A stretch of 64,000 bases of DNA from Octopus sinensis (GCF_006345805.1 NC_043003.1:71176001-71240000), one strand, 5' to 3'. Positions 33,401-64,000 are shown, numbered from the stretch's first letter. The notes: generated by a model from the sequence alone, not told the origin. Made by a program: numbers and translations.

Positions 33401-36400
33401 AGCGACAATGTTTCATTTTTGAAAGCGAAAAAGCAATGTAGTATAAACTGAGACAAATCGCTTCTTTGTATTTTTGCCCTTCTATTTATTTGTGTTTTAC
33501 TCCTGATTAAAATGTTTTCCTTGGAGTAAGTTCTGATCGATCAGAAGTAATTCGGCTGACTATATTATCTGATGTGAACTTCAATTTTCAAGACATCAGA
33601 ATGTGTTTTGAAAAGATTGAAATGCTAATTCAAGCCAGTCAACCAACCATACTGTAGCTCCATAGTTTGCTGATAATTTTTTCTTGATAATTTCGAAGTT
33701 GTCTTCAATAAACTGCTCCTTGGTGAGATTTGTACAATGACGTTGGTAGTCGTGACATTTATTCTTTCTCGTGTAGTAACACGAAGGGAAATGTTCGAGG
33801 GCAAAACAACGCAGCTATATAATCTTATTCTATTTTTGGTCATGCTGTGGAAATTGCCTAGTAAGTTGCTATTTATTTCCAAATAGAATGACTGTGACAG
33901 CAAAGTCCCTTTTCAATAAACAACTTAGTCTTGACAAAAAAGTTCTTGAGAACATGGTGAGGGGTGAACAGGTGTTACTCTCAGAGTTTGTAGTAGGAAT
34001 CATAACGGTCATTCCTAGCTGTTGTAAATTTTAAAATGGACTAAAATTATGTCAGTATGCTTCGGATTTTCAGCATCTGCACATTTCATCTGAATATATA
34101 TTCTTATAGACATCAGAACCCCTGATAATTTACGGGACCAACTTGCATTGGCTGGAAAACGAAAAGATGTGAAAAAATTACAGGAGGTCATAATGGAATG
34201 TGAGAAAGCGGAATATGCAGAATTGGGTAATGACCTTCGGAAAGCTCGGGATGTATTGGAGAGACTCGGCGGCGGCCGTGGAGGTAGAATCATTTTCAGC
34301 AATTGCATTTCACTAAAATGATCTATCCAATCCATCCATCCATCCATGCATGCATGCATCCATCCGTGCATCCATCCATCCATCAACTCACCCGTCCGTC
34401 TGTCTGTATATCTAAGCACACACACACACACACACACACACACACACACACACACACACACACGCATACACACACACAAATTATGTTTTAGGAACATTGG
34501 GTCTTGAAAAAGATATATAAGCTATAAATAATAGTATAAACATTGTGTTTGGATAGAAAGCGTCGAAGGCTGCTGTTTGACACGAATTCAGATATCCTGT
34601 AAACATGAAAAGCCTTCTACAAAAGTGATCATAAGAATTTCTCTATCCATTTTCGAAAATTTATTGTTACCACCGAGAATTGTATTTTAAAGATGGATGA
34701 TTGAATGCATATTTAAAACTTTTGCTATTCCACATATATATTTTAGCTGCGGTTTTATTATGTTAATAAATGGTGACATAATATGCAGAGAGACGATGGC
34801 TAGTGGGAGGTATTAAGAAATTGGGCAAAGGTTAGTTGGGCTTTCGTATACATACACATTTGGTTTCCAGATTCTCGATAAAACTGAGGCTAGTACGTGT
34901 ACTTGGAAACTGCCTATCGTTAGACATTCTGGTCATTTGTGATCTCTGTAAGATACAACTTCCGGTGATCATTATTTTCCCCGCAGAAACCAATTCTTCA
35001 AGGAGCTCCCGCCTCCGGATATTCCAATACTAATAAATACTAGGTATACCTTTATACAATTAAGCACATCCATGTACACCACAAATACATGGTACCAGAG
35101 CATACAATCTTACCCCTATATTTCATTTCGCTTATGTGCAGATTTTCTCTAAACAAAATTTCACTTTGATTTTCATGCAAATATATAGTACACATCAAAA
35201 CGAGGGGGTTGGTTACATTCTTCCAATTCCTCTACATGCACGGGCCACGTTTCACGACATGTGTGTGTAGGTGCGTGTGCAGCCAAGTACGCAGAAGGTG
35301 TATTAACAAGAAAGAATGTCTGTATAAGAAATTGTACATATGTATATATACTCATATCGAATCATCCGTAAATATATACGAATAAGAAAAAACATATGCA
35401 TATTTACAAAATAGAAAAAGACACAAACATATAGATACACATACACTCCACATATATTTTAACATTTAATGTTTTAGGTGGAGAGAATCGATGCATTTAA
35501 TATTTACATTTCAAGCAGGATTGTTTTCGCTTGAAAAAAATTTCCAAAAAGCTAGTATACGGAGATGTAAACATGAAAACACAATACACAAACACGCACA
35601 CCACATCTACATGTTATACTTACGATGTAAGCATATATCACTTCCAACACATTCTATAATCTGATATACATTCGCTTTCAATACATTCTATATTAACGAT
35701 GTGAGGACATGTCAGCAGCACAGTAATTCCCGCTTTGGCTTCATCTTCCTATTAGTATAAAAACTTTTGTCAAAATGATAGTTTTGTGGAGAAATGTTCC
35801 CGTGTACCTTATCATTGAACACACGAATTGTTTCCGTGTGTGCGTGTGTGAATGTACTTGGCGTGTGTGAGTTTGTGCGCATTTATGTTTGTTTGGATTC
35901 GATTGTATATTTCCGTGCGTTTCTGTGTGTGTTTCTGATCGCTTCTATGTGTTTCTCTATGATCCTGTATGTGAGATTATTGGCAAACGGATGTTTTTGC
36001 TTGTGTTTTTTACTCTTTGGTATTGTGTGCATGACATCACTAAAGACATATACAGAAATTATTTGCAAGTTTGTTTATTGCGTTGTTAAAATACTCTGTC
36101 AGGGACGAAGACGCCCGAATCACTTCGCCGAAAACTAAAGTCTGCTATGAAGCAGGGAGATAAAGATACACTGGACAAAGTAATTCACGAATGCATCGCT
36201 GCTGGAATGCCAGAATTAGACGTAGACATAAGCGTCGCTCGAGACGTATTGAAAGACGTTAAAATTTCACCTCCAACAGGTACATAGCATTCACTTTGCT
36301 TTCAAACGCCTATTGTACTAATAGAATATTATACATTCTTCTATTATGATATCGAAACATCATTTGAAAGCGCCTCTTTTATGAGGCTATTGAAACTTTT

Positions 36401-64000: not shown

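Follow-up and report, generated by a model that had tools for sequence, protein, structure and literature searches.

What is a long tandem repeat made of whole exons and introns doing inside a gene, and is it a working part of that gene, a recent duplication, a decaying stretch or a fault of assembly? The question is raised by a 64,000-nucleotide stretch of Octopus sinensis DNA (GCF_006345805.1, NC_043003.1:71176001-71240000), here called the window, with positions counted from its first letter. Inside a KY-like gene, the plus strand of the window carries a 2,235-bp unit repeated head-to-tail in 12.55 copies from 35958 to 64000 (28,043 bp). We consider it probable that this is a real, frame-preserving multi-exon macrosatellite, homogenised by unequal recombination and encoding helical beads, and that the frameshifts seen in some of its exons are mostly consensus errors. 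An earlier note, made from the same sequence, had described an array from 35958 with a 2.23-kb unit, 13 or more copies and four exons contributing 233 amino acids (aa) per unit; the start proved exact, perfect identity beginning there, and the unit figures agree with a consensus of 2,235 bp, 12.55 copies and 699 nt of exon sequence.

The period and the limits of the array were read from the window itself. In a k-mer analysis, the self-distances of 20-mers peaked at 2214-2236 bp, and repeated 20-mers filled 75-100% of each 1-kb bin from 36001 to 64000, with almost none earlier. Comparison of one unit with the window by BLAST returned 13 consecutive head-to-tail copies over 35579-64000 at a raw identity of 95.7-99.8%, and the 2,235-bp consensus was taken from a multiple alignment of the units, anchored on the acceptor of exon A (the four exons of a unit being A to D). 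Traced backwards from the first exon A, the sequence agrees with the array over 140 bp without a mismatch and first departs from it at 35957; the near-identical zone therefore begins exactly at 35958. Since the window ends partway through the last unit and the array runs on beyond it, "13 or more" copies is a fair description. Immediately upstream lies a diverged leading edge (35579-35957, plus strand). BLAST and a global alignment place it, at about 86% identity and with a 26-bp gap, on positions 1689-2095 of the consensus, within the D-to-A intron; it starts in a (CA)n tract and gives way abruptly to 100% identity at 35958. Divergence followed by sudden perfect identity is the expected look of an edge copy that escapes homogenisation. 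A (CA)n tract stands at the 5' limit of unit homology, and the length of the tract differs among units; such microsatellites were observed at 34413-34478, at 35579-35600 and at consensus 1645-1716, that is, in every D-to-A intron, and they are candidate substrates of the original unequal exchange.

Each unit consists of four AG|GT-bounded exons of 177, 174, 174 and 174 nt (699 nt, 233 codons), all of phase 1-1. The symmetric phases and the 699-nt total mean that any number of units preserves the frame, at 233 aa per unit. Every array exon encodes one module of about 58 aa with the motif SLRxxL..A...KD...L...I.EC...G.PEL..D...AR..L..LGGGRG, and the introns are as similar between units as the exons are. 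The AG|GT boundaries are kept in all 51 complete array exons, with GTTAG-type donors like those of the annotated expressed exons, and as assembled 38 of the 51 are intact, essentially without amino-acid change.

Five units are fully intact (U1, U3, U8, U10 and U12), and all units lie on the plus strand. U1 (36098-38328) has its four exons at 36103-36279, 36481-36654, 36967-37140 and 37336-37509, and U3 (40558-42771), which served as the reference copy, has exon A at 40563-40739, B at 40941-41114, C at 41427-41600 and D at 41796-41969, with a 21-bp deletion near 42168 in its D-to-A intron. Between them, U2 (38329-40557) retains exons A to C, with one amino-acid change in C, and has a -1 frameshift in D (39567-39739). 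U4 (42772-45220) is a noisy copy in which C and D are frameshifted and the D-to-A intron contains an internal tandem duplication of about 204 bp (44805-45213), the two copies of which match at 89%. U5 (45221-47446) retains D alone, with frameshifts in A, B and C, whereas U6 (47447-49674) shows a -1 frameshift in D next to intact exons A to C; in U7 (49675-51905) A and B are frameshifted, with C and D intact. U8 (51906-54124) has four intact exons and is followed by U9 (54125-56357), with a -2 frameshift in A and intact B to D. U10 (56358-58259) combines four intact exons with a 329-bp deletion near 58195 in its D-to-A intron. Exon B alone is intact in U11 (58260-60482), where A, C and D are frameshifted; all four are intact in U12 (60483-62716), which shows one difference from the consensus. 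The partial U13 (62717-64000) has intact exons A to C, and its D (from 63954) is cut by the window end. The duplication in U4 and the deletions in U10 and U3 may reflect true variation among units or errors of local assembly.

The nature of the differences between units bears directly on how the frameshifts should be read. Measured against the consensus, the units carry 37 isolated substitutions (about 0.13%), a further 58 substitutions that are tightly clustered and resemble local indel misalignment, and 85 indel events. One-base deletions lie in homopolymers of at least three bases in 30 of 48 cases, against a background of 20% (p = 1.5e-10), and in exons in 11 of 48 cases, against 15 expected (31%), so that exons show no depletion (p = 0.28). 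Most of the noise sits in U4-U7 and U9-U11, and there is hardly any in U1, U3, U12 and U13. Such an excess of deletions in homopolymers over substitutions looks like the consensus signature of noisy long reads and runs opposite to natural mutation spectra. For the published O. vulgaris reference, Oxford Nanopore Technologies (ONT) R9.4.1 reads averaging about 10 kb were assembled at about 27x and polished with linked short reads; an assembly of this type would explain both the noise, because short reads cannot be placed within the array, and the uncertainty of the copy number. The description of the copies as near-identical thus holds for the units, given their distance of about 0.13% from the consensus, and needs amending in two respects, since 13 of the 51 complete exons are frameshifted and homology of about 86% already sets in at 35579.

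The substitutions, for their part, carry information on the relations among units. Variants at consensus positions 1197, 1558, 1718, 2015 and 2036 define about eight unit haplotypes, which are often common to neighbouring units. Even if both alleles had been merged in the assembly, about eight haplotypes imply at least four units per allele. Such mosaic sharing of variants among neighbouring units suggests repeated exchanges.

The array is the youngest level of a repeat structure that extends through the rest of the window. A hidden Markov model (HMM) of the four array modules, applied to the six-frame translation, detected 27 diverged single-module exons on the plus strand between 248 and 34283, bringing the window to at least 79 module exons. 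In splice-consistent models these upstream exons are almost all 174 nt long and of phase 1-1. They share DNA only over exon-sized stretches, at 60-72%, and their introns cannot be aligned, in agreement with the earlier observation that introns are near-identical in the array and lack visible homology in the 5' half. Modules of two types alternate upstream in A-B-C-D tetrad order (one of the two having the motif ECE.A.YPEL...GGGRG), and protein identity between upstream tetrads is about 50%. The gene is therefore built as a hierarchy of module, dimer, tetrad and a recent array of one tetrad. The same HMM scan in six frames gave no credible module match on the minus strand of the window. Placement of the array on the minus strand or in another gene was rejected, all module matches being on the plus strand and in consistent phase, and an array of transposable elements or short interspersed nuclear elements (SINEs) was also rejected as the identity of the unit, which resembles the rest of the window only exon to exon. 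Upstream exons within 248-1757 are 94.8% identical to those of an orthologous fragment from a relative, L006, and the introns 84.5%. One of the non-array module exons, at 908-1058 (plus strand), has lost one A from an A4 run compared with its L006 orthologue and is frameshifted, which suggests a residual homopolymer error outside the repeat, or possibly a real pseudo-exon.

The identity of the host gene came from protein comparisons. An exhaustive search with the module profile returned 238 matches among 1.84 billion representatives, mostly short open reading frame (ORF) fragments with a few long proteins. Two of the long proteins combine a Transglut_core with a KY-type Ig-like domain, and their clusters contain an Octopus bimaculoides "kyphoscoliosis peptidase-like, partial" protein, a Haliotis "ltd-1-like" protein and the O. 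vulgaris protein CAI9725887.1 (2069 aa). Eight plus-strand exons within 16615-26347 encode residues 998-1468 of CAI9725887.1 at about 100% identity (tblastn), the sole difference being one V/I exchange in exon 18918-19094; this places the window inside the KY-like gene of O. vulgaris or of a very close relative. CAI9725887.1 contains Transglut_core (E = 1.3e-5) and Ig-like_KY (E = 2e-64, in three stretches), and the transglutaminase-like core and the KY-type Ig-like domains are encoded upstream of the window. This public model is probably incomplete, or represents one isoform only. A search with its C-terminal tail for longer annotated orthologues gave a single Logan match, a paper on the octopus skin-mucus proteome mentions "kyphoscoliosis peptidase" once, in a non-specific way that could not be used, and Rfam gave no match over the whole window. 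With the family of KY, hillarin and LTD-1 the octopus gene shares Transglut_core and KY-type Ig-like domains. Vertebrate KY is a protein of about 660 aa, and we know of no helical module array in it; the octopus KY-like gene appends dozens of 58-aa three-helix modules that match no Pfam family.

Comparison with related species allowed the history of the array to be examined beyond the window. A sister-species contig, L009, whose run accession is near that of L006, spans the region from the A-B intron to exon D and is 83.3-84.6% identical to every unit, a divergence equal to that of unique introns (84.5% identity). L009 is equidistant from all units. The tetrad is therefore older than the split, and its copies were made identical later. 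L009 itself shows no D-to-A junction. In a more distant relative, L010, an exon is 80% identical in nucleotides to array exon D and 61% to the upstream D-type exon at 34110, the latter value being the background level between paralogues. The intron flanks of this D-type exon are also similar to those of array D, and after a 245-bp intron it is followed by an exon that is 81% identical in protein to array exon A, the next-best module of the window reaching 57%. The junction in L010 implies that at least two tandem tetrads of the array type were already present long ago. In these two other species the orthologous array exons have open reading frames. A third comparison is offered by contig ctg117591l of ENA ERZ21867824 (L007, L008 1-20204 and L004), from another species, which carries an older A-B-C-D tetrad array with exons 78-90% identical, unalignable introns and units of 2.7-5.6 kb. 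Like the window array, it consists of tandem tetrads of the same module family in A-B-C-D order with one module per exon. Third codon positions in this contig show 4-5 times more change than the first two, and the array there is an old one, kept by purifying selection and not homogenised. Tetrad amplification thus recurs in the KY-like gene, with the modules maintained as coding sequence.

Three other explanations were weighed against a real, coding and homogenised array. We think it unlikely that the array is real and merely intronic, a degenerating stretch whose exons are skipped and whose frameshifts are genuine. Such pseudo-exons would fit the annotated model, which passes from 26174-26347 to exons beyond the window, as well as the 13 frameshifted exons of 51, the lack of indel depletion in exons and the absence of the array tetrad from the database proteins searched (cluster representatives). 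However, an indel-to-substitution ratio above 2:1 with a homopolymer bias is the spectrum of nanopore-like error and not the natural one, splice sites are kept in 51 of 51 exons with 38 perfectly intact, and the orthologous array exons stay open in two other species. The gap in the model is not specific to the array either, because the same model also leaves out 19 exons outside the array on which purifying selection acts. In addition, the O. vulgaris gene models were produced on an assembly with its repeats masked and were combined with EVidenceModeler (EVM), so that omission of the array says little about real splicing. Far less probable still is an assembly artefact in which one or two real units were looped, or haplotypes were mixed, into 13. 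The approximately eight haplotypes rest on substitutions and not on indels and call for at least four units per haplotype, the structure of the leading edge is coherent, and assemblies of other species independently contain tandem tetrads of this gene; what speaks for an artefact is the noise of the interior units, the possibility that the 204-bp duplication of U4 and the 329-bp deletion of U10 are mis-joins and, if the assembly is of the ONT type, a mean read length of about 10 kb, which cannot span more than 28 kb.

The remaining alternative concerns timing. A single, very recent burst, raising the tetrad from one copy to at least 13 without long-term concerted evolution, would account for units only about 0.13% from the consensus in isolated substitutions and for the lack of a D-to-A junction in L009. 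Against this, a D-to-A junction of the same type exists in the more distant L010, a leading copy about 14% diverged switches sharply to 100% identity, and neighbouring units share variants in a mosaic, so that we find a burst improbable. Taken together, L009, L010 and the leading edge favour long-term concerted evolution over a single burst. Of the two possibilities left side by side by the earlier note, recent expansion or ongoing concerted evolution, recent or ongoing homogenisation is supported, and a one-time burst is less favoured. A more far-reaching version, in which an octopod tetrad array older than the species split has been turned over continuously by unequal crossing-over and the proteins of individuals differ by hundreds to thousands of residues in a rod or tether made of a three-helix domain family not described before, is possible, and we put it forward with more doubt than confidence.

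Several observations nevertheless weigh against a real array that is translated and kept uniform by recombination. Frameshifts interrupt 13 of the 51 complete array exons in the assembly, and the array exons are too alike between units for a test of selection. CAI9725887.1 uses eight of the at least 79 module exons of the window and omits the whole array, together with the 19 module exons at 248-8474 and 29743-34283. The partial O. bimaculoides model has no match to the window, and no protein matched the array tetrad at high identity, although this word-indexed search covered cluster representatives only and is weak evidence. The junction in L010 could be an independent duplication in its own lineage. 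The case for an ONT-based assembly of the window is circumstantial, since the window and the annotated protein disagree at one residue, and the copy number and the putative attribution to error come from one assembly.

With these reservations, a homogenised coding macrosatellite can be described as follows. The amplified 2,235-bp unit would be one copy of the ancient A-B-C-D tetrad of the gene with its introns, and (CA)n tracts are possible breakpoints of the first duplication. Unequal crossing-over or gene conversion between the 2.2-kb repeats would then keep the units near-identical. The gene product would comprise an N-terminal transglutaminase-like core, KY-type Ig-like domains and a very long run of three-helix modules of about 58 aa, each unit adding four helical beads with Gly-rich linkers to a putative rod or tether part. 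Residual differences, including those in the 13 frameshifted exons, would mostly be long-read consensus errors that short reads were unable to polish, and the assembled copy number should accordingly be taken as an estimate only. All exons would be intact in vivo and present in the mRNA, with the protein-length polymorphism of a coding variable-number repeat that the earlier note predicted.

The module itself does not belong to a curated family. No Pfam family reaches its gathering score for the tetrad, the best hit having 16 bits against a cut-off of 23, and the module regions of the relatives' proteins are likewise without Pfam annotation. A profile search of the PDB found only de novo helical designs (E >= 0.006), Foldseek gave no match at E <= 0.001 for either the tetrad or a single module, and neither sequence nor structure was significantly similar to known three-helix repeat folds (spectrin-like and bacterial GA/FIVAR-type). 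AlphaFold2 predicts three helices per module at a predicted local distance difference test score (pLDDT) of about 80-89 (about 83 for the module), with Gly-rich linkers that are of low confidence or disordered, and gives the tetrad a predicted template modelling score (pTM) of 0.41; in this model the modules are predicted to be beads on a string, with no fixed geometry between them. The module profile also matches repeated stretches in a Rhodelphis marinus protein (P0041, 3162 aa), where they lie behind a myosin motor head, and in a Polykrikos kofoidii protein (P0146). These protist matches may mean that the module is widespread and sparse, or that helical repeats have converged. Two adjoining modules occur without an intron in one ORF of the relative L005, at 13733-14074 and again at 17820-18164, and a fused pair is also found in proteins P0022 and P0023; the fused modules of L005 are an apparent intron loss in the module array of that relative.

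Other elements were noted in the introns of the window. An intronic ORF of 138 aa on the minus strand (6694-7110) matches the Pfam family Transposase_1 (mariner-type DDE) at E = 7.7e-5, just below the cut-off, and is probably a transposon remnant. The 8-kb intron between the exons at 8301 and 16615 contains short interspersed repeats, 78-87% identical and some of them inverted, at 8857-9008, 11614-11730 and 12507-12658, and at 12242-12305 and 12549-12612; they are possibly SINE-like elements with (AAT)n tails. In one intron, a pair of long (AT)n tracts (2447-2582 and 3162-3458), separated by about 600 bp, score as mutually complementary arms, which could form a large hairpin or be a fragile site.

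In structure, the array of the window is an exon-carrying macrosatellite of the LPA KIV-2 class, so that the phenomenon is well known and what is new is the lineage, the gene and the uncurated domain. LPA KIV-2 has a 5.6-kb unit present in 1-40 units per allele (PMC11462820). Both arrays are intragenic, run head-to-tail, include whole exons and introns, are near-identical and frame-preserving, and add a set of modules per unit, and the copy range in the octopus is comparable. The octopus unit, on the other hand, has 2.2 kb and four exons encoding small helical modules, whereas that of LPA KIV-2 has two exons and encodes kringles, and the octopus array sits in a mollusc KY-like gene of a cytoskeletal type. 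Copy-number polymorphism and expression have been demonstrated for LPA, whereas for the octopus array both are putative. Resemblance extends to the triplicate region of NEB, in which eight exons are repeated three times (PMC9109913), and to a comparable segmental-duplication region of TTN (PMC9142044). Nebulin and titin likewise contain, within the gene of a giant modular structural protein, a multi-exon tandem block, in their case one prone to copy-number change, and the symmetric exons encoding super-repeats of small modules in those proteins parallel the A-B-C-D tetrad; module type and lineage differ, and NEB has about three copies compared with at least 12.5 in the octopus.

At the practical level, this is a locus at which octopus assemblies and annotations are unreliable, with incomplete gene models and residual homopolymer frameshifts, and it identifies a recurrent helical module of about 58 aa for which there is no curated family. 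Should the array prove to be expressed and polymorphic, it would rank with LPA KIV-2 in scale, as an invertebrate case in which part of a giant cytoskeleton-associated protein varies naturally in length, and studies of intragenic concerted evolution and of how module number tunes a structural protein could make use of it.

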